Source of the DNA: Octopus bimaculoides
Taxonomy: Eukaryota
Assembly (NCBI RefSeq): GCF_001194135.2
Contig: NC_068986.1
Span: 47,526,611 to 47,568,633, forward strand
Direction: 5' to 3'
Length of the DNA stretch: 42,023 nt
The notes under the pieces were generated by a model, which was given only the letters and a program-made list of their open reading frames with translations, did no database searches and was not told the DNA's origin. Made by a program: the position numbers and the translations under genes. Positions within the stretch are counted from its first letter, which is position 1. Each line of letters begins with the position of its first letter. Of this stretch, positions 970-41,353 are shown piece by piece.

Positions 970-1979
970 ATGGAATTTAAGGTTGAAGAATTTATTGAAT
1001 TTCCCAGTGTGGAGCAATTGAGGATTTAAAAAAATCAGAATTGTTGTTATTGGCCAAGCATTATGATCTGGTGGAGGCTAAGTCTACTATGAAAAAAGNN
1101 NNNNNNNNNNNNNNNNNNNNNNNNNNNNNNNNNNNNNNNNNNNNNNNNNNNNNNNNNNNNNNNNNNNNNNNNNNNNNNNNNNNNNNNNNNNNNNNNNNNN
1201 NNNNNNNNNNNNNNNNNNNNNNNNNNNNNNNNNNNNNNNNNNNNNNNNNNNNNNNNNNNNNNNNNNNNNNNNNNNNNNNNNNNNNNNNNNNNNNNNNNNN
1301 NNNNNNNNNNNNNNNNNNNNNNNNNNNNNNNNNNNNNNNNNNNNNNNNNNNNNNNNNNNNNGAGCTTTTCAAAATGGTTTTGGAACATTTAGTTGATGAA
1401 GAAATTTTTGAAGATTCGGCTTTGTCATTGTTGAAACCAGAGAAAACAGATGCGTTTGAGTTGAGGAAATTAGAATTAGAATTTCAAAAAGCAATAAGGG
1501 AAATGGAAATTCAAAAAGAATTAAAATTGAAAGAAATGAAATTACAGAGTAGAAAGTTGGACACTACTCGTGGTCAGACAGATTTCGATGTAGTGAAAAA
1601 TATTAGACATGTACTCCCATTTAGTGAAGCAGATATTGATAAATTTTTCCTTCATTTTGAAAAGGTGGCAATAAATTTGAGATGACCTGTTGAGCATTGG
1701 ACAATGTTAATACAATGTGTTTTAAAAGGCAGGGCTCAGGAAGTCTATTCGGCTTTATCGATCGAAGCAAGTTTGAGTTATGAAGTGGTCAAACAGGCTA
1801 TTCTGAAAGCTTATGAACTGGTCCCCGAGGCATATAGACAAAAATTTAGGCAGTCCAAGAAAAGAAGGGAGGATACCTATGTAGAAGTTGCGAGAAAAAA
1901 GGAATATTTGTTTGATGGGTGGTGTATGGCAAAAGAAGTTGGGGAAGATTTTCACAAATTGAGGCAGCTTATATTATTA
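970..1979 (+). pseudogene. gag: Decayed Gypsy gag (Gmr1-like, SCAN-related capsid region); 3'-truncated, no pol
   Basis: MEFKVEEFIEFPSVEQL.. (frameshift near 1021) ..LAKHYDL..; FDVVKNIRHVLPF..DKFFLHFEKVA; TGA at 1683 where Trp is expected; AQEVYSALS..YEVVKQAILKAYELVPEAYRQKFR..KLRQLIL. Cut by a SINE at ~1977. Confidence 0.85.
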
Positions 1980-2173
1980 GTACGCCGGACAAAATGCTTA
2001 GTGGCATTTCGCACGTCTATAACGTTCTGATTTCAGACTTCACCGAGGTGGACTTTACTTTTCATCTCTTTTAGGGCCATTGAAATAAGTAATAGTTGAG
2101 CACTATGGCTGGTGTAATTGATTTACCCTCCCACCAAAAATTCAGGCGTTATGTCTATAGCAGAAAGGATTAT
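1977..2173 (+). mobile_element. tRNA-derived SINE, family A (ATT tail), 5'-truncated
   Basis: ttagtacgccggacaaaatgcttag...gtctatagcagaaaggatta aligns with fuller copies such as 23053-23275. Confidence 0.85.
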
Positions 2174-4192: not shown

Positions 4193-4456
4193 ATATATTA
4201 TATTAAACAATATTTGTTCACAGGAGGTATGATTAAGTGTTTGGGTATGAATTAATGGTATACGTGAGAAGTGTGTATAAAAAAAAAGGCAGAGAGAATG
4301 GGAGTGGCAACCTATGAACAGGTGTCAAAATGTGAATGCATATGTAAGACGTGTCTGCTTACCAGAGAGAGAGATAGAGAGAGAGAGAAGTAGTAGTAAG
4401 AAATTGTATGTAAATTTATGAATATATACAAGGTGCATATATCATGCATTTGGGTA

Positions 4457-4484
4457 TAGAATGGGTTGGGGTATGTGTATGCGT

Positions 4485-4523
<39 letters not shown>

Positions 4524-4953
4524 ATGTGTGTGTGTGTTGCATTATATATATATATATATATATGTATGTGTGNNNNNNNNNNNNNNNNNNNNNNNNNNNN
4601 NNNNNNNNNNNNNNNNNNNNNNNNNNNNNNNNNNNNNNNNNNNNNNNNNNNNNNNNNNNNNNNNNNNNNNNNNNNNNNNNNNNNNNNNNNNNNNNNNNNN
4701 NNNNNNNNNNNNNNNNNNNNNNNNNNNNNNNNNNNNNNNNNNNNNNNNNNNNNNNNNNNNNNNNNNNNNNNNNNNNNNNNNNNNNNNNNNNNNNNNNNNN
4801 NNNNNNNNNNNNNNNNNNNNNNNNNNNNNNNNNNNNNNNNNNNNNNNNNNNNNNNNNNNNNNNNNNNNNNNNNNNNNNNNNNNNNNNNNNNNNNNNNNNN
4901 NNNNNNNNNNNNNNNNNNNNNNNNATAGAATGGGTTGGGGTATGTGTATGCGT

Positions 4954-8168: not shown

Positions 8169-8947
8169 NNNNNNNNNNNNNNNNNNNNNNNNNNNNNNNN
8201 NNNNNNNNNNNNNNNNNNNNNNNNNNNNNNNNNNNNNNNNNNNNNNNNNNNNNNNNNNNNNNNNNNNNNNNNNNNNNNNNNNNNNNNNNNNNNNNNNNNN
8301 NNNNNNNNNNNNNNNNNNNNNNNNNNNNNNNNNNNNNNNNNNNNNNNNNNNNNNNNNNNNNNNNNNNNNNNNNNNNNNNNNNNNNNNNNNNNNNNNNNNN
8401 NNNNNNNNNNNNNNNNNNNNNNNNNNNNNNNNTGTTTGAGGTTTTGCCCAAATTTCTGCATTCAGTTGCTCGTAAGACAAATGTAAGCGGGGAATTCTGA
8501 AGGTTGCGGTTCCAGAGAGGAATGTTAGAGCAAATTGTGGTAGGCAGTTTGCTAGATCAGAGGAGCAGAAGCATATGTAGTAGCAATAGAAAAGGCGAAG
8601 AGAGAGAGAGAGAGAGGGAGAGAGAGGGAGAGAGAGAGGGAGAGAGAGTTTATGGTTGTAGCAAATCGGTTGGATGAATTTTTTTTGACGCGATCTCAGA
8701 TATCTGAGTTTGCAAGCATTGAACCAGATATGTACAAATCATCACCTGCCTGTAAGTATGGTGAAATAAACTAAATTATTAAATCATTGAAGTGAAATAG
8801 CAAACAAAACTAAATAAAGGTACTTGGTACAAAACCTTTTTAAGCTTTTACTTTGGTGAGCCTAATTCATTAACCGAGAAAGAATATTATCATCGATCAA
8901 CTGAAATTATCTACATTAAATAACAATCGTAAAATTTGTGGGGTATA

Positions 8948-9835
8948 CGAGGTGGTATGAAAAGATTGTTGGACTAGTTATGTTTAATACAAATTTTTTT
9001 ATTTATCTAAGTTTTAACATCATCGCCTACGAAATAGTCATCTTGCACAATAATACACCAGTCCTGGCGTTCCTGCCACTTTGGAATCCGGCCTGGAAGT
9101 TGTTTTCCATAAGCGAGTCGAGGACCTTCTGCGATTTGCTCTGGATCTCGACAACGGTGTTAAGACGGCAACTTTAGAGCAGCATTTTCATCTTGGGGAA
9201 GAGATGGAAGTCCACAGGTATTAAATCTGTCGAATAGGGTGGGTGCAGAAGCTACGCCATGTTTACTTTGGCGAGAAACTCACGAGTGAGGAGAGCTCGG
9301 TGAAGAATCCAATTCTTTGCGCTCCACAAATCCGGTCGCTTTCACCGAATGTCTTCCCTCAAATGCTTCAAAACATCGCAGTAGAATTCTTGATTGACAG
9401 TCTGGCCCTGGGGGACGAATTCTCGATACACAATACCACATTTCTGGAGGTGACGTTCGTGACAGGTCTTCCAGATCGCTCATCGTCTTCCAGGGACGTT
9501 CTTTCACTTTTGATTCGCCCATGTCAGTCGAAACATTGCGTACGACCCTTTGCCATAAGCTTGCCTATGCATGATCAATATCTCTGTAGCAGACTTCCCA
9601 AGTTTAACGCAAAATTTTACGTTGGCTCTTTGTTCCTGTCTATGGCAAAATCGCAGACTACAGTATAAACGTGATCACAAAAATACAAATTTCACAACTT
9701 GGGAATTGAACACAGGAAAGTCATCGGCACACTGTCTCATGAAGGTCACTGCTTGCTCTCACTGCGCATACAACCGCGTTCTGCCATCTGTTGGCGCGCT
9801 ACAGAACTAATCCAGTAACTTTTAATGCCACCTCG
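8948..9835 (-). mobile_element. Internally deleted mariner transposon with both TIRs and TA duplication
   Basis: TA|CGAGGTGGTATGAAAAG ... CTTTTAATGCCACCTCG|TA. Minus strand encodes SLEDDERSGRPV, GIVYREFVPQGQTVNQEFYCDVL and HPPYSTDLIPVDFHLF (YSPDLAP-type motif), with stops. Confidence 0.9.
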
Positions 9836-10047: not shown

Positions 10048-11049
10048 ACCCCATTTTTTGGTGGTGGTGGTGGGGTATCATACTTATTACATATAACTCT
10101 TTTATGAAATACCATGATATAGCAACGAAAAAGAATGAATACATTAAATTTATAGACTGGGTAGTCAAAGAAATTATTAAATATTCTGGAAAATTGTATT
10201 CACTTACTGAATAATTTATCATATATCTTATGTGCGAGAACGGCATTAACACGTTATTATAGAAAAATTGTTCTTAGTATTCGTATAAAAAAACTTGAAA
10301 GATTTTGCTTGTAAATCTTCTAATATTGTCTTTTGTAGTATTAATTGAGAATAATAATCATCGAAAAAGCTTTTGTACAGATTAATGAATATTTTTATTT
10401 ATTTTTTTTATAAAAGTAACCAAAAATTAAATTATGTCCCAGAGAGATACAAATTTAAAGAAGGTATACAATTTTCTTTCCGTTTATATTTGCTTTATAT
10501 GAAATTGTTACTGATGCATAAAGTTCTCTAATTATTATTGAACAATATTGATGACAAGTAACCTCTAAACAACATATTTTGGACAAATATTTCAAAATAC
10601 AAAACGGAATCGTTTTTGTTTTTGTGTTTTTTATTAAGAACTCAAGAAACTATATGGTTGGCTGGTAACGAATATTAACATTCAATATTAAAACGAACAC
10701 TATGAAAATAATTGTGATGTTGACCATTAAGTGTTTACAAACGACAAATTTCGGTTATCGCAAGCTTTGGAAATATGCTAATTGTGTACGCAAAGAAATT
10801 TTTAATGAAATAATTTACAGAAATGAGATTCACCTTCATTTTCCAATTTCCAAACAACTAAGTTATACTTGTTTATTCTTTTTTTTTCACCCCTTTTCTA
10901 TTAGAAATTTTATACTTCAGGATTAGGCACATATGAATAAAACTGGCTATTTATTGGCAATATCTAGTGATTTTGTGCTAATAATTTCCTGTGAAATACT
11001 TTTACAAGGATAAAATCAAATATACACGTACAAACACATCGTATAATAG

Positions 11050-11263
11050 ATTTTGATTTTGGCACACGGCCAGTAATTTTGAGGGATGTAGGATTGACGA
11101 TAACATCGATACCAGTACTTGATTGGTACTTTGTTCCATCGACTCCGATATAATGAAAAGCTAAGTTGACCTCGGTGGGATTTGAACGCAGAACGTGAGG
11201 AGTCGTAGCGAGTACCGCAAAGCATTTTTGTCCGACGTTCTAACGATTCTGTCAGCACGCCGC
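11050..11263 (-). mobile_element. SINE family A
   Basis: ggcacacggccagtaatttt..gacctcggtgggatttgaacgcagaacgt..taacgattctgtcagcacgccgc. Confidence 0.85.
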
Positions 11264-11270
11264 ACGCACG

Positions 11271-11308
<38 letters not shown>

Positions 11309-11729
11309 CATATCACATCACATATACAGAGTAATGTATGTTGCCTGTTTGATTTGTTACTAGAATTACCCCAGACGTCAACCGCTAGCAATTTTGCCAC
11401 TTTTCCATGATGAGGTACATGACTTTTGAATTAATTAAAATACAGGTATAATCAGTGCAAGATTTTATTCTTTCTCTATATTTAATTCAAGCATTTTCAT
11501 TGAAAATAAAGTATAAAACTCTTTTACTAGTCAATATACCATTGGCTACGTACTCTTATATAATTTAATATTTAGATAACAGAATGCATCTAATAAAAAT
11601 TAATACATGAGACAAATGTGAATTAATATGTATTTCTCATTTACACATATTATTTGTAATAAGATGAAAGAAATATATAATAGTATTTCTAAAATTGTCC
11701 AAAGCACTTTTTCCACAAAGGCACTATAC

Positions 11730-13621
11730 AATCTTCTAATATTGTCTTTTGTAGTATTAAGTGAGAATAATAACCAGCGAAAGAGCTTTCGTACAGATTA
11801 AAGAATATGTTTTTTTTTATAAAAGTAGCCAAAAATTAAATTATGTCCGAGCGAGATACAAATTTAAAGAGAGTATACAATTTTGGGGGGTTTATATTTG
11901 CTTTATATGAAATTGTTACTGAAACCTTTTTGCAGTTTTTCGTTTTTGCAACGAACAACGTCTGCAAACTTTTTTTTTCCCCCATTTTTTTTCAACGTTA
12001 TGAAAGTTAATAGTTACTCTGTTGATACCCACCTTAGTTAATTTTGATTTTCTCTCAGTTCTGTGTTTTCTGGAAGAATAGCTCTCACGTAATTGAGTTG
12101 CAATGTCAAACCTAAATTTCATATGGTCGTTGTTCTTTCGTGGCGGAGGTACCTTGTGGCTTATTGCATAAACAATATATGAATTAACACAGGTTCACTA
12201 AAAAACATACAATGTGCCTCCACCATTTATTTCCAGGTCGTCCAACTGGGTAGTATGCTCGATACTGGCCGGATTTGTCGACACCACCCATACATTTGTT
12301 ATAGGAAATATTTACTGCGGGTTTTCCTCACCACCAACACCAGCTTATTCATTGGTAGACAGAAATAAAACCTTTATTTTTTATTTTTATATAATGTTAC
12401 AAACAAATTTTCTTTCTGTATTTGAAGAATATCCCCCACTTTAAAAAAAAATTTGCTGTTTTCATTTCACGTGGTAGCCCTATACGGTTCCTCACAGCAG
12501 TACTAAACGTTAAGTACTTACATGAGGTCGAAACACAGGTGTCGCTATTGATGGTGAAATGCTTCAGTTAGAGTCCATACTATGTCATACCCCAATCCAT
12601 ATAGCCTGTCTCTATAATATTTTTTCCTTGTGTAGACATCAAAGTTTGCACAATATCCTGTGTCTGATTCACAGACTTCCCATACCTTGATGCCCCATTT
12701 AGTAGTTTCAACAAGGCATGTATTGCCAAAAACGTACCTTACCTTTATAGCCTATCAAGGCTTCGTCTACACTGAGATTTTTCCCGGCCAGATACACAGT
12801 TTTATACTTATTACGAAGTAAATCAATAATAGGACGCATTTTATATAGGGGATCGTAGTTTGGGTCTTTCAGAGTCAGACAAATGTAAATATTGAGATAT
12901 TTTCGAATACCTTGTTTTCAATATAAAGCTAGAGGTATATGGATCACAATACCTTACACCAGGACTCCAGTAGTTCTACAGTCGAGGAAGCTGCTTGATA
13001 CCAAACATAATATTTATGGCAAGAAAAAAGCTCGCATTTCTGCAGTATTGATTGGCTGCTATAGTGGATCGAGTCTTTCACTAATAGAAATCATGCGTTG
13101 AGCATATTTATTCGTTTCCTCCACGACGGTTTAAAAAAAAAACTTTCTGGTAAAAATAAAAATAAATAGTCCGAGGGTTGAGCATCAGGAGGTACAGTTT
13201 TTCTTCGACTGTGTTGCTGTAATGTCTTGAATATCGTAATTTTCATCACTTTCATTATTAAAATTTTCTTCCTCGTTCGACGAAAATTCATTAATATCAA
13301 TATCAGATTCGTCCGGAGAACAATTACTGTTATTTTCGCTTATATTTTGTACATCATAAAGAGTAAAACCCTCAAAGTCGCTACTTGCTGACGTCATATG
13401 GATAAATTCTAATATACACACTTCACTTCAAACGTTGGAAAAATCACGTGGTCTCAAACGTTTCACGGTATTTTTACATGAATAAAGGCAGGTAAAGATT
13501 TATCTTGCATTATTTAAAAGCTACGAGTATTCAATAGCGTGATTTGTTTATTTATTTATTTTTTGCGATTCCGTAAAGGAGTCAAATACAGCCGGATTTG
13601 GCCGATTCAAACCAATAAGGG
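11730..13621 (-). mobile_element. Decayed piggyBac transposon (DDE_Tnp_1_7 / PGBD4-like transposase pseudogene)
   Basis: Minus strand: acidic N-terminus (13400-13185); NKYA..EMRAF..GIKQLP..YWS; DPLYKMRPIIDLL..LSVDEALIGYKGKV..WGIKVWEVCESDTGYCANFDVYT; YNKCMGGVDK..YYPVGRPGNKWWR; truncated Cys-rich end VCRRCS. Terminus ttca|CCCTT at 13621. Other boundary uncertain. Confidence 0.85.

Positions 13622-22291: not shown

Positions 22292-22324
<33 letters not shown>
22124..22324 (+). mobile_element. SINE family A inserted in the previous copy's ATT tail
   Basis: attggcggcgaactg..gcacgccggacgaaatgcttagc..gagttcaaatt, then (ATT)n. Confidence 0.9.
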
Positions 22325-22326
<2 letters not shown>

Positions 22327-23025
22327 GCTTGACTTTTGCTTTGTATTTGTACAAGTTGACTCCAAGTCTCACCCAGAAACCTCATGTTCTAGAGAATGTT
22401 TAAGAAAACTTAAGAAAACTGAGTTTGTTTTAAAATTTGAGATTACATAGACAGTATTCTACGTAGCCTATGAGCAGGGAGGAATCATCCCCTTTTGCTA
22501 TCATTCCTAGGGCACCTATGACAACAGATATTGTTTTAGTCTTGAGGTTCCACATTTTGCCAATTTCTATTTCAAAATCTTTATACGTGTTCAGTTTTGG
22601 TAGGTCTTGACACATAGATTTATGTCGACTGGGACAGTCATATCAATGAGGAGGCATGATTTTTGTCTGAAGTCTTTTAATATAATATCTGGCCTATTCG
22701 CATCTATTTTTTTTGTCAGTAACATATTTCGGTGACTGACCAGTTAATGATATTGAAATTGTAAGTCACGACTGGTATGGCTAAAGTACTGATCGCTTCG
22801 ATCCTGTTTCTTGCATTTAGCTCTGTCTTGAGTATTGCTGTCACCCTGCGATAACATTCCCTTCTGATCCTTTCCCTCATAACTGAATGTTTGATTCCAT
22901 CCCCTTCAAATACTCCTAGGTATTTGTAACTCTCCGCTGGTTCTAACGTCTTTATTAAATTCTGCTGGTCAAAATTAACATTGGATGTTTCTGTCATTTT
23001 TCTTTTAATAAAGGTAGCTTTTGCA
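22325..23025 (-). mobile_element. 5'-truncated, internally deleted RLE-type LINE (R4/Dong-like): RT C-terminus fused to restriction-like endonuclease
   Basis: AKATFIK..ESYKYLGVFEGDGIKHS..ELNARNRIEAISTLAIPVVTYNFNIINW then KKIDANRPDIILKDFRQKSCLLIDMTVPVD..YKDFEIEIGKMW..VVIGALG; (TAA)n at the 3' end. Confidence 0.85.
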
Positions 23026-23052
23026 TTATTATCATCATCATCATTATTATTT

Positions 23053-23275
23053 GGCGGCGAACTGGTTGAATCATTAGCACGCTGGACGAAATGCTTAGCA
23101 ATATTTCGCCTGTCGTTACGTTCCGAGTTCAAATTCCGCCGAGGTCGGCTTTGCCTTTTATCCTTTCGGAGTCGATAAATTAAGTACCAGTCAAGTACTG
23201 GAGTTGATGTGATCGACTTTCCCCCTTTCCCAAATTTCAGTACTTGTGCCTATCGTAGAAAGGATTATTATTATT
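23053..23275 (+). mobile_element. SINE family A, full length, well preserved
   Basis: ggcggcgaactggttgaatc (A-box region), gagttcaaattcc (B box), ..tgtgcctatcgtagaaaggattattatt. Confidence 0.92.
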
Positions 23276-26968: not shown

Positions 26969-27600
26969 TACTCATATATATATATANNNNNNNNNNNNNN
27001 NNNNNNNNNNNNNNNNNNNNNNNNNNNNNNNNNNNNNNNNNNNNNNNNNNNNNNNNNNNNNNNNNNNNNNNNNNNNNNNNNNNNNNNNNNNNNNNNNNNN
27101 NNNNNNNNNNNNNNNNNNNNNNNNNNNNNNNNNNNNNNNNNNNNNNNNNNNNNNNNNNNNNNNNNNNNNNNNNNNNNNNNNNNNNNNNNNNNNNNNNNNN
27201 NNNNNNNNNNNNNNNNNNNNNNNNNNNNNNNNNNNNNNNNNNNNNNNNNNNNNNNNNNNNNNNNNNNNNNNNNNNNNNNNNNNNNNNNNNNNNNNNNNNN
27301 NNNNNNNNNNNNNNNNNNNNNNNNNNNNNNNNNNNNNNNNNNNNNNNNNNNNNNNNNNNNNNNNNNNNNNNNNNNNNNNNNNNNNNNNNNNNNNNNNNNN
27401 NNNNNNNNNNNNNNNNNNNNNNNNNNNNNNNNNNNNNNNNNNNNNNNNNNNNNNNNNNNNNNNNNNNNNNNNNNNNNNNNNNNNNNNNNNNNNNNNNNNN
27501 NNNNNNNNNNNNNNNNNNNNNNNNNNNNNNNNNNNNNNNNNNNNNNNNNNNNNNNNNNNNNNNNNNNNNNNNNNNNNTAAAAATTTTAAAATAACTTTTT

Positions 27601-36185: not shown

Positions 36186-38382
36186 TTTAATTATATATAT
36201 TTATATATATATATATATATATNNNNNNNNNNNNNNNNNNNNNNNNNNNNNNNNNNNNNNNNNNNNNNNNNNNNNNNNNNNNNNNNNNNNNNNNNNNNNN
36301 NNNNNNNNNNNNNNNNNNNNNNNNNNNNNNNNNNNNNNNNNNNNNNNNNNNNNNNNNNNNNNNNNNNNNNNNNNNNNNNNNNNNNNNNNNNNNNNNNNNN
36401 NNNNNNNNNNNNNNNNNNNNNNNNNNNNNNNNNNNNNNNNNNNNNNNNNNNNNNNNNNNNNNNNNNNNNNNNNNNNNNNNNNNNNNNNNNNNNNNNNNNN
36501 NNNNNNNNNNNNNNNNNNNNNNNNNNNNNNNNNNNNNNNNNNNNNNNNNNNNNNNNNNNNNNNNNNNNNNNNNNNNNNNNNNNNNNNNNNNNNNNNNNNN
36601 NNNNNNNNNNNNNNNNNNNNNNNNNNNNNNNNNNNNNNNNNNNNNNNNNNNNNNNNNNNNNNNNNNNNNNNNNNNNNNNNNNNNNNNNNNNNNNNNNNNN
36701 NNNNNNNNNNNNNNNNNNNNNNNNNNNNNNNNNNNNNNNNNNNNNNNNNNNNNNNNNNNNNNNNNNNNNNNNNNNNNNNNNNNNNNNNNNNNNNNNNNNN
36801 NNNNNNNNNNNNNNNNNNNNNNNNNNNNNNNNNNNNNNNNNNNNNNNNNNNNNNNNNNNNNNNNNNNNNNNNNNNNNNNNNNNNNNNNNNNNNNNNNNNN
36901 NNNNNNNNNNNNNNNNNNNNNNNNNNNNNNNNNNNNNNNNNNNNNNNNNNNNNNNNNNNNNNNNNNNNNNNNNNNNNNNNNNNNNNNNNNNNNNNNNNNN
37001 NNNNNNNNNCACACACACGTATAGTGGACAAGCGAAAGGAAGTGGATGGCACGCAACACTTTTTGTGGGAGTTATATATATTTTTCATAACACTTTGAAT
37101 CCGCTCTTGGGTGCGTAGAACATGTTAATTGTATCAGCTATCATTCTCCTAATGTCTGATGAGATGAATGTGTTCAACCCACATAGTTTCTTTTCAGACA
37201 GTTTGAATGGTAGGTAAACCCACCAGCCGCCGTAATCAACAATTATCCATCACAGAAATGTTGTAAATGGATAGCACCAGGAAAGAACTGTTTAGTGAAA
37301 GTAAAAAACATTTTTTTCCTACGGATGTACAAATAGAAATGATAAGAAAGGGTGAAGAAGTGAAGTGGGAGGAAATACTGTATTATTACAGTTAGTGGAA
37401 GGATTACCATGTTAATGGGAAATTCGCTCTTTGTACCTCTAACTTGAGCCATAAATCTCCAGACACGCTGCATACACATATATATCGTTGAGTTAACATA
37501 CAACGTACGTAGCTTCAGACATATCAATACTATTATTGTTGTTGTCAGTTAGTCATTAGAAAATTGGTGGATTGGTGGTAGTAATGGTAATGTTGAGTGT
37601 ATTGGTTTTGCTGCTGGTGGTGATGTGTTGGCGAGTGGTGTAATTAGTTGTCGTGGTAGTCTTATTGTTCTTGTTTATTGTATTTTTGTTTCTGTTTGGT
37701 CTCAAGTCAATCTCATTGACCTAATCTCAAATACGTTTCATGTAGTTTTTTAAAAAATACACTAGGATACCACATCATCTAGGATACCACGATTTTCTTT
37801 TATTTGAGACGAAGTTTCTTATCTTGTTCATATTATTACTACTGTTGTTGGTTAATTAAGGAGTTAATGGGCTAGTAATAGCAGAGGTTGTATTGGTTTT
37901 GGTGCCGATGATAGTTGTGTTAGCGTTGATAGTGGTGGTGGCGAAAGTTGGTTTAGAAAGACAGGTAGGTACTTACATAGAGAGACAAATGCTCATTGTG
38001 ACCTATAAAAATGTACATGAACACGCTCACACAGACACATATACTTGCACGTATACACACATACACGCATGTGCATCTGTGGGGGTGATAAAGTTTATAT
38101 TTCACGAATTGTTAAACTATTTTGATCTTAGCTAAAAGGTTGAGAAGCATCCATTAGGCCAAGAAAGAAATATTGTTTCTAATTCTTAAAATCTATCCGT
38201 GTTTTCTTCACGGTAAAATTTCAGACAGTAGCCTAAAATTTGTGGTCATACATTACATTACAATTCCCGTAGCGAAACGCAGAGGATATATATATATATA
38301 TATTTATTTGAAGTTAAGCAACAAAAATTCAATAGGTGCCTCAAACATTTTAAGTACCACATTTAATCTTTTCATTAAATCT

Positions 38383-38383
38383 A

Positions 38384-38448
<65 letters not shown>
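38383..38448. repeat. (ATT)n microsatellite immediately left of the retrozyme-like locus
   Basis: Seen directly. Confidence 0.95.
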
Positions 38449-38453
<5 letters not shown>

Positions 38454-38640
38454 CACAGAGGGGGAACGCTAAGCAGTGATAAATGAAATTGCAATGTTAT
38501 TAACAGTCCGAATATACTTGATGCACATTCGAACTGGGGAACAAGCTACTCATTGCGTTTTGTCATGGAGAATATATCTCGTTTGTTGATAAATGGTGTG
38601 TATACACCTAGGTCAGCTCGCAGAGCCACCTACCAAGAAA

Positions 38641-38684
38641 GTGAGATGTTAACATTTCGGAGTAGTTGTCTCCTCATTGGTCAC
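38641..38684 (-). ncRNA. Second hammerhead copy with mutated core (CCAAUGA) and intact palindromic stem III
   Basis: Minus strand: GTGA CCAATGA GGAG acaacta CTCC GAA ATGTTAACAT C TCAC. Confidence 0.75.
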
Positions 38685-38993
38685 AAACACTAAGCAGACG
38701 ACATTGCGAGCTGAATTAAAAGATTACCTCTCTTATGCTTTTCCGGTTACCGTACCGTAACTGCGTTTTGCCACGGAGAGTATATTTCGCTTGTTGACAA
38801 ATGGTGTGTATACACCTAGATCAGCTCGCAGTGCAGTGAGTAGCTTCTTTCCTTGACATTGCTTAGCACTCTTCCTCCCTAATTTACTTACGGTGAGCCG
38901 TTGTATAGCGCTACCAGTCAACGTATGATGACTGGAAAAGCATAAGACAGGTAATCTCTTAATTCAGCTCACAGTATCATCTGCTGAGTGTCT

Positions 38994-39037
38994 GTGACTG
39001 ATGAGGAGACAACTACTCCGAAATTTTAACATCTCAC
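38994..39037 (+). ncRNA. Type I minimal hammerhead ribozyme, predicted cleavage after C39033 (AUC)
   Basis: Stem I GTGA(38994-97)/TCAC(39034-37); core CTGATGA(38998-39004); stem II GGAG/CTCC with loop ACAACTA; GAAA(39020-23); stem III ATTTTAACAT (consensus ATGTTAACAT). Confidence 0.88.
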
Positions 39038-39435
39038 TGTCTAGATAGGTGGCACTGCAAACTGATCTAGGTGTGTACACACCATTTGTCAACAAACGGG
39101 GTACATTCTCTGTGACAAAACTCAGGGAGTAGCTTCTTCCCCAATGCGAACGTGCATCAAGCATATTCGGTTTGAGGGTAACATTGCAATTTCCCTTATC
39201 ACTGCTTAGCGCTCCCCACCATAATTTACGTACGGTGAGCAGCCATATTGCACTGCCAATCACCGTACGATGACTGTAAAGGAATGAGAAGTAATCTCTT
39301 GATACATACATACATACATATGTGTGTACGTATATGCATGTATGTACGCATACATGTATGTATATTTGTGTGTATGCATATTTACATATATATAGATCTC
39401 TGTGTGTGTGTGTGTGTACATATGCATGCATACAA

Positions 39436-39476
<41 letters not shown>

Positions 39477-40144
39477 TATTTATTTATATATGTATGTATG
39501 TATGTATGCGTACATACGTACAAAAACGTATACATACATAAGAAGACAACGGCAAAGTGGGGCGCCAGCATGATTCGGCAAAGTACAGCTGTTCATTTGT
39601 AGTGTAATGTATTCCTATAGGTGGATAAACATCTCGTAAACATTGGGATCTTGAGGATCCTTACAGAATGCTTTCATCTTACTGCGGTGGTATATCTGGA
39701 GATTACAACCTTGGCAAAAATCCATCTATCGTCAAGCGTAATCCCTAATGTCTAAGCTCAACACTGTAGACTAACCGATAACTTCTCAATTATACAGAAT
39801 CCCTAATAGTTATAATTTTATTTTCTTGTATATCTTATTGTTTGTTCAGCAAAGTATAAAACGTTATAAATCTTTTGCAAGACTAGTTATTTTTAATTTC
39901 GAAATAATGTTTAGAAATGTATATTGAATCTGTTCAATATTTTACTGTGGTGGACTTCGCAGATCGATCAAATTAATACCAGTCAGCTCTTGACTTCTTT
40001 TGAATTATCTATAATCATGCCCAGTAATATTGTAACTTTTTGGGAAAGATGGGGAAAATAAATATAGCGGGGTTCAAAACTAGACTGTAATTATTTAATG
40101 CATATTAAATAATTATGTGAGCGTGTGTGTGTGTGTGTATGTGT

Positions 40145-40213
<69 letters not shown>

Positions 40214-41353
40214 GTTCCCTAGACGTATGTATGTATGTACACACACACACAGACACACACACACATATACACATATAGATATATAAAAGATATTGCAATA
40301 AATATTAAGATCACCTATATCGAACTTCGTAGCAAAAGCAGGAATATGTAGACAAAGCGTTAATGCTTGACCTAGCTAAATTCATAACCAAATATCAGTT
40401 ATATTACCTCCAGTATAGAAATCTCTAACCGATGATATACAGCTCACTCTGCTACATAACTATAAGCAAATACTACATAGGAAAGTACTAATAGAAACCA
40501 CATTCACTCACNNNNNNNNNNNNNNNNNNNNNNNNNNNNNNNNNNNNNNNNNNNNNNNNNNNNNNNNNNNNNNNNNNNNNNNNNNNNNNNNNNNNNNNNN
40601 NNNNNNNNNNNNNNNNNNNNNNNNNNNNNNNNNNNNNNNNNNNNNNNNNNNNNNNNNNNNNNNNNNNNNNNNNNNNNNNNNNNNNNNNNNNNNNNNNNNN
40701 NNNNNNNNNNNNNNNNNNNNNNNNNNNNNNNNNNNNNNNNNNNNNNNNNNNNNNNNNNNNNNNNNNNNNNNNNNNNNNNNNNNNNNNNNNNNNNNNNNNN
40801 NNNNNNNNNNNNNNNNNNNNNNNNNNNNNNNNNNNNNNNNNNNNNNNNNNNNNNNNNNNNNNNNNNNNNNNNNNNNNNNNNNNNNNNNNNNNNNNNNNNN
40901 NNNNNNNNNNNNNNNNNNNNNNNNNNNNNNNNNNNNNNNNNNNNNNNNNNNNNNNNNNNNNNNNNNNNNNNNNNNNNNNNNNNNNNNNNNNNNNNNNNNN
41001 NNNNNNNNNNNNNNNNNNNNNNNNNNNNNNNNNNNNNNNNNNNNNNNNNNNNNNNNNNNNNNNNNNNNNNNNNNNNNNNNNNNNNNNNNNNNNNNNNNNN
41101 NNNNNNNNNNNNNNNNNNNNNNNNNNNNNNNNNNNNNNNNNNNNNNNNNNNNNNNNNNNNNNNNNNNNNNNNNNNNNNNNNNNNNNNNNNNNNNNNNNNN
41201 NNNNNNNNNNNNNNNNNNNNNNNNNNNNCCTCTTTCTCTTCTCTCTTACTCGTGTAATCGTTTATGTGCAAAGACTCGCACGCGTGCACTCATAAATATT
41301 TACACTTAAGCAAATAAATGAATCAACTCAAAACATTCTTTACTAAAACATAC

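Follow-up and report, generated by a model that had tools for sequence, protein, structure and literature searches.

A decayed hammerhead repeat in Octopus bimaculoides, probably the relic of a retrozyme-like element

Architecture of the repeat locus and its surroundings

The window analysed here, a stretch of 42,023 nt from Octopus bimaculoides, is AT-rich, holds dozens of microsatellites and long N runs (sites of these kinds lie, e.g., at 1100-1370, 4540-4950, 26990-27580, 36230-37000 and 40570-41270) and belongs to a gapped draft assembly. Near its right end, positions 38461-39306 make up a compact repeat that consists of two arrays on opposite strands, which meet head to head with their 5' ends together at 38834/38835 (Table 1; unit positions are given as u, with u1 being window position 38915). 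The minus strand carries ~1.1 units, in which copy B0 is joined to copy B1 across a 132-nt deletion, and the inverted arm that results (I1), which the original prediction had not noticed, extends over 303 nt and is 84% identical to the plus copy, ungapped and with differences at 49 of the 303 positions. Since no assembly gap falls between 38000 and 39700, the inverted arrays do not border on a scaffolding gap.

On the plus strand, a tandem unit of ~340 nt had been proposed, and our data support this in part: direct repeats (families D2 and D3) are spaced 340-342 nt apart and, because the u343-to-u1 junction is seen twice on this strand, the period of the unit is ~343 nt. However, the tandem amounts to only ~1.35 units (with an overlap identity of 76-80%), and TRF, run with default settings and with a minimum score of 30, did not detect a period of ~340 nt at the locus. 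No further copies of the unit were found within the window. Where three copies can be compared with each other (u138-211), they have 8, 5 and 4 unique changes over 74 nt; such a star-like divergence, at ~5-11% per branch, fits a single insertion event that yielded all the copies together. A MITE or foldback transposon was considered and rejected because the outer ends of the locus are different unit positions (u303 and u49) rather than terminal inverted repeats, and ARAGORN found no tRNA-like head, as a SINE would have, in the locus.

Table 1. Window coordinates of the repeat copies, their boundaries and the hammerhead elements (minus, reverse strand; no entry, not strand-specific)
Feature	Position	Strand	Remarks
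(TAT)22 microsatellite	38384-38449		left insertion boundary; TRF and sequence
'atatat' run	38450-38455		follows (TAT)22; minus array ends at ~38459-38461
Copy B1, u1-u303	38461-38763	minus	inverted pair I1; less CpG-decayed copy
Hammerhead copy B	38641-38684	minus	core broken (CCAAUGA); sequence, alignment
Copy B0, u138-u211	38761-38834	minus	5'-truncated start of minus array; CG retained at u197-198
Copy A0, u210-227 and u277-343	38835-38914	plus	5'-truncated start of plus array; ~49-nt deletion between the two parts
Copy A1, u1-u343	38915-39257	plus	sole complete 343-nt unit; GC 44.6%
Long hairpin extending helix I	38972-39057	plus	hammerhead at its tip; MFE folds
Hammerhead copy A	38994-39037	plus	descriptor scan
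Copy A helix I	38994-38997 with 39034-39037	plus	4 bp, GUGA with UCAC
Copy A core CUGAUGA	38998-39004	plus	
Copy A helix II	39005-39019	plus	4 bp, GGAG-ACAACUA-CUCC
Copy A GAA	39020-39022	plus	
Copy A helix III	39023-39032	plus	2 bp only
Copy A C17	39033	plus	predicted cleavage between 39033 and 39034
u197-198	39111-39112 / 38566-38567 / 38774-38775		third copy (B0) still CG
Copy A2, u1-u49	39258-39306	plus	end of plus array, short of second hammerhead position
Compound microsatellite (ATAC)n, (TG)n, (TA)n	39302-39530		right boundary; TRF and sequence

As for coding potential, the strand antisense to the hammerhead has a frame that stays open for 111 codons in copy A (38967-39299, minus strand), nearly the whole unit, and for 68 codons in copy B (38487-38690, plus strand). 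Changes to this frame between the copies are neutral: 20 codons differ nonsynonymously and 6 synonymously, the three codon positions have 8/11/13 differences and there is no third-position bias. Because of this neutral change, and because neither the unit nor its antisense ORF has a Pfam match or a homologue, the ORF probably is a chance one, and a coding element was rejected for the same reasons. Among 5.8 billion protein clusters there are no ORFs like the antisense frame, and the absence of such relatives argues, albeit weakly, against an abundant and expressed family. With 343 nt, a GC content of 44.6% and no coding capacity, the unit matches the profile expected for a retrozyme monomer (~170-400 nt, GC below 45-50%).

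Other mobile DNA in the window is fragmentary. A LINE reverse-transcriptase fragment (22298-23249, minus strand), whose sole named protein match is from O. vulgaris, is 85-87% identical over 22298-23025 to nucleotide sequence from Octopus vulgaris chromosome OX597814.1 (positions 10357-12006 of the stretch retrieved from it), in support of an octopod origin. At 12548-12917 (minus strand), two adjacent ORF fragments match DDE_Tnp_1_7 (E = 1e-9 and 2e-3) and represent a decayed PiggyBac-like DNA transposon. A gag-like ORF at 1686-2027 (plus strand), with a weak SCAN match (E = 3.6e-4, below the Pfam cut-off) and next to an assembly gap, probably is a retrotransposon capsid remnant.

Hammerhead copies and their predicted folds

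Our descriptor scan confirms that a complete type I hammerhead, as previously called from the sequence, lies on the plus strand (copy A in Table 1) with all core bases, helices I to III and C17 in place. The motif reads GUGA-CUGAUGA-GGAG(acaacua)CUCC-GAA-A15.1...U16.1-C17/UCAC (the slash being the predicted cleavage site); every conserved core position is present, and the stretch 38998-39033 fits the type I core definition throughout (C3-U4-G5-A6-N7-G8-A9, G12-A13-A14, an A15.1-U16.1 pair and H17). Its topology is that of a three-helix junction in which helices II and III are capped by loops and helix I is open, being closed only by the remaining unit. Copy A is the sole match to this RNAmotif-style type I descriptor in the window, on either strand, and the descriptor returned 0 matches in 416 kb of unrelated DNA. 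Among dinucleotide shuffles of the window, however, at least one match occurred in 47 of 3000 when helices I, II and III had to be at least 4, 3 and 2 bp long, and in 18 of 3000 when helix II, too, had to be at least 4 bp. Because 0.6-1.6% of shuffled windows contain such a motif, the motif alone is weak evidence, and at this rate per window hundreds of chance motifs are to be expected in a genome of a few gigabases.

A check with Infernal or RNAMotif had been suggested with the original prediction, and the two differ: while the RNAmotif-style descriptor picks out copy A, the Rfam hammerhead models match nothing. By cmscan, no hammerhead was found in the whole window or in close-ups of 951 nt and 116 nt, whether at gathering score or with E<=10. 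As a Penelope-type motif from Mytilus edulis (see below) was missed as well, little can be read into this negative. Other output of the cmscan runs consisted of a chance IRE_II match and low-complexity microRNA-like matches in the flanking microsatellite. The latter (39302-39350, both strands; mir-3149, mir-297 and others) score 16-26 bits against gathering scores of 60-100 and were dismissed as low-complexity artefacts, since they lie wholly inside the (ATAC)n/(TG)n repeat.

The sister motif on the minus strand (copy B) still has helices I and II together with loop 2, GAAA and C17, but its core reads CCAAUGA, with U4G5 replaced by CA (plus-strand positions 38678-38679), and thus falls outside the type I definition. 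Its helix III is a perfect 10-nt palindrome, AUGUUAACAU, that can form a 3-bp stem with a UUAA loop (AUG-UUAA-CAU) and has a self-duplex energy of -10.2 kcal/mol, compared with -3.6 kcal/mol for copy A. The short stem III ascribed to copy A has only two base pairs, and the perfect palindrome is that of copy B. When folding is constrained to the hammerhead, the structure lies 2.2 kcal/mol above the MFE for copy B and 8 kcal/mol above it for copy A. In other words, the core is preserved but the fold weakened in copy A, while in copy B the fold is preserved but the core broken; from these models, self-cleavage activity is predicted to be poor for both present copies.

In both copies, MFE folds support an extension of helix I into a distal helix with G.U pairs, which had been put forward as plausible, and place the hammerhead at the tip of a long hairpin. 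In copy A, 38972-38990 pair with 39041-39057; in copy B, the hairpin (~38617-38711) comprises 10-bp and 7-bp helices and, by sequence inspection, about half of the 10-bp pairs are G.U. Between the two motif-bearing copies there are 0 compensatory changes and one change from A-U to G.U, the latter in distal helix I. Measured against shuffles, the sense strand of copy B folds with z = -5.0 and the antisense strand with z = -1.3, values obtained by folding the 303 nt as a circle, which is an approximation. As modelled, this strand-specific structure of copy B points to selection at the RNA level and with the polarity of the hammerhead.

Can the locus still work? That it is an active retrozyme gene giving rise to ~343-nt circular RNAs seems highly improbable to us, even though one of its motifs has a complete core. 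With a single hammerhead position on either strand, the locus is unable to release monomers or to form circles. Further arguments against activity are the fold of copy A (8 kcal/mol above the MFE, as stated, with two base pairs in helix III), the broken core of copy B and the divergence of the copies (16-24%). Active retrozymes have been defined by a TRF-detectable repeat and no fewer than two units in succession that carry complete hammerheads (Li et al. 2026); the octopus locus offers one complete core and TRF is silent. Hence, the locus is dead today, and its founder may itself have been catalytically dead.

CpG decay and the founder core

The cores of the two copies differ at adjacent bases, which are TG in copy A (38999-39000) and CA in copy B (38678-38679), and such a difference is typical of a CpG whose decay took place on one strand in one copy and on the opposite strand in the other. 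Over the 303-nt alignment, five CpG sites are kept in both copies, five are lost only in A, one is lost only in B and two are TG/CA, the latter being the hammerhead core and u197-198 and no others. With locus-estimated rates, a CG founder accounts for a TG/CA site ~13x better than two independent transitions. As the cores are TG/CA and copy B0 keeps CG at the sole other site of this kind, the founder core quite possibly was CCGAUGA, which is non-canonical; an estimate that is site-agnostic and ignores context gives this founder core a probability of ~70-80%. If so, copy A may owe its perfect CUGAUGA to deamination of the CpG in CCGAUGA, which would have created or restored it.

These observations are at the heart of an alternative that sees the motif as a chance look-alike: an unrelated tandem and inverted duplication that happened to contain a CCGAUGA near-hammerhead, from which one copy came to read CUGAUGA and the other CCAAUGA by CpG deamination, with no ribozyme family involved. 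In support of it, TG/CA falls on U4G5 and a CG ancestor is proven at the sole other TG/CA site, descriptor matches arise in shuffled windows at the rates given above, Rfam is silent and a second family member was not found in the window, in 20 kb of O. vulgaris DNA, among the protein clusters or in JGI metagenomes. Several features, however, are hard to reconcile with chance. The expected rate per 343-nt unit is only ~5e-5 to 1.4e-4; the 10-nt palindrome of copy B is not required by the descriptor and would cost roughly a further 1/64; the motif sits in the one locus of the window that has the architecture of a Penelope-like insertion; and it is found at the tip of a long, G.U-rich and strand-specific hairpin. 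So we regard a chance look-alike as unlikely and, judging from the per-unit rate, the palindromic helix III and the locus architecture, a genuine hammerhead lineage as about four times likelier than chance.

What the CpG decay means for the motif depends on this choice. If the family is real, it is about equally likely that an intact founder suffered two hits in copy B and that the founder carried U4C, with CUGAUGA restored in copy A. Without such a family, copy A would owe its perfect core to an accident of CpG decay. Either way this calls for caution: the hammerhead core of a single decayed copy can become perfect, or perfect again, through CpG deamination, and for this reason hammerhead calls made on single copies need a family consensus.

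Relation to retrozymes and Penelope-like elements

In animals, non-LTR retrozymes consist of short units of 170-400 nt in tandem, have a low GC content, carry type I hammerheads and make circular RNAs (PMC7229834); a preprint of 2026 links them to the pLTRs of Penelope-like elements. The latter carry hammerheads in their terminal repeats (PMC8557442, PMC4209133), and their insertions are partial tandems, often with an inverted 5'-truncated copy upstream, that prefer microsatellite targets (PMC8557442). The octopus locus combines the same traits, i.e. a partial tandem, an adjacent inverted 5'-truncated copy and microsatellites at both ends. In keeping with this, we favour as the probable explanation that 38461-39306 represents one old insertion of a ~343-nt non-coding hammerhead retroelement of the animal non-LTR retrozyme kind, derived from a Penelope-like terminal repeat. 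The original proposal of a decayed retrozyme-type copy therefore holds as the best reading of the core, the palindrome, the 343-nt unit and the architecture, but not in so far as such elements are recognised by consecutive complete hammerheads.

How might such an element have lived? Its type I hammerhead, were the family live, would excise every unit from multimeric transcripts, probably as a dimer of adjacent units because helix III is a palindrome, and a host tRNA ligase would circularise the monomers. Multimeric or circular unit RNA could then be reverse-transcribed into a microsatellite by the Penelope-like machinery of RT and GIY-YIG endonuclease, and the insertion product would be a partial tandem on one strand adjoining an inverted, 5'-truncated partial tandem on the other.

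Known systems lend themselves to comparison at several levels. Palindromic helix III designs have been described for metazoan type I hammerheads (PMC4209133), including those of mussel and amphibian retrozymes (PMC7229834, PMC4209133), and the Mytilus galloprovincialis retrozyme in particular resembles our locus in its 4-bp helix II and short palindromic helix III (mussel ...GAAACGCGCGUC, octopus ...GAAAUGUUAACAUC; PMC7229834). With metazoan non-LTR retrozymes in general the unit shares its length (within 170-400 nt), its GC content (below 45-50%), its non-coding nature and a mollusc host (PMC7229834). Unlike these, which are clean multimers, the octopus locus has ~1.35 and ~1.1 units in two orientations with one intact core, and its helix I is 4 bp long followed by an internal loop where the canonical metazoan helix I has ~6 bp. 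The units of amphibian satellite 2, axolotl retrozymes (HHR_Amex1/2) and Schistosoma Sm-alpha are alike in size (~330-350 nt) and in having a type I hammerhead, and theirs, too, have a weak helix III with a palindromic tetraloop cap and are active as dimers. Yet these families occur in 10^4-10^5 copies and long arrays with demonstrated transcripts and cleavage, whereas the octopus repeat is known from one decayed locus and belongs to a phylum unrelated to theirs.

Likeness to the pLTR hammerheads of Penelope-like elements is close enough to raise a further option, namely that the hammerhead is real but comes from an autonomous Penelope-like element, as part of a 3'-terminal (pLTR) fragment that was rearranged, and not from a separate retrozyme family. 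Both have a short helix I and a palindromic helix III implying dimer action (PMC4209133, PMC8557442), in both, motifs form pairs on opposite strands at distances of a few hundred bp (100-700 bp has been reported for hammerhead pairs of this kind; PMC4209133), and both show the inverted 5'-truncated copy, the partial tandem and the microsatellite target (PMC8557442), which, together with the microsatellite ends, are Penelope-like hallmarks. Moreover, retrozymes and pLTRs are sequence relatives in Xenopus, and the hammerhead lies ~185 nt from the 3' end of the minus array, comparable to a motif in Mytilus edulis (OY782956.1, positions 8832-8880 of the retrieved locus). This min-HHR-like motif, with CUGACGA, a bulged A, a 5-bp helix II, GAAA and an AU-rich palindrome, is located ~600 nt downstream of a Penelope-like ORF and ~150-180 nt short of the (TA)n that forms the end of the element, and it was missed by Rfam as well as by our strict descriptor.

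Against a pLTR fragment speak the u343-to-u1 junction, which occurs twice, and the ORF-free 343-nt period, since tandems of autonomous elements have a period of ~3 kb and the octopus repeat does not reach full-element length. Also, a six-frame motif scan of the window detected no remnant of a Penelope-like RT or GIY-YIG domain, and no such ORF lies at the locus or nearby. To our minds, a pLTR fragment is improbable. Helix II differs as well, in that Penelope-like min-HHRs usually have 6-8 bp with a bulged base and the octopus hammerhead has 4 bp and no 5' bulge. In the scallop Pecten maximus (CACRWE010000375.1), a Penelope-like element has the inverted 5'-truncated upstream copy (arms at 4377-4621 and 8759-9003 of the retrieved locus) and repeat copies that end in TA-rich sequence; the descriptor found no canonical hammerhead in this locus. 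Within its Penelope-like 3' region (8566-8600), the scallop sequence ...GGGACGAAAUGUACGUAUCGG resembles GAAAUGUUAACAUC of the octopus unit, but no canonical CUGANGA was recognised upstream of it.

Returning to the retrozyme-like relic that we prefer, its family is a putative one, deduced from a single locus: no other member was retrieved. The 20 kb of O. vulgaris DNA, which come from the sole locus retrieved via the LINE reverse-transcriptase fragment, contain no copy of the unit, and scans of JGI metagenomes gave 0 matches with a 23-mer and 44 with a 17-mer, all of them without hammerhead context. Matches from ENA were examined as cephalopod DNA and discarded, having no repeats in common with the window. 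On the side of the autonomous partner, a Penelope-like RT probe, which served as bait and not as evidence, drew 5737 Penelope-like proteins, and the best 120 of these 5737 include no cephalopod-labelled protein. An old expansion of Penelope-like elements at JC ~0.2 has been reported for Octopus genomes, with which the per-branch divergence at the locus (5-11%) is compatible.

In the literature searched, whose coverage is incomplete, we found no description of hammerheads or retrozymes from cephalopods. An octopod retrozyme family, undescribed in that literature, with multimeric CUGAUGA arrays elsewhere and expressed ~343-nt circRNAs is conceivable, though we consider it doubtful; if true, it would be the first self-cleaving circRNA system in cephalopods and one mobilised by their Penelope-like elements. 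Cnidarians, a bivalve mollusc and amphibians are known to have elements of this kind, which have been reported more widely from other invertebrates, so the conceptual gain would be small. Cephalopods stand out for heavy transposon activity and unusual RNA biology. Should a live family exist elsewhere, the retrozyme and hammerhead-circRNA pathway would extend to cephalopods, and the unit described here would provide a concrete sequence for searches of octopus transcriptomes.
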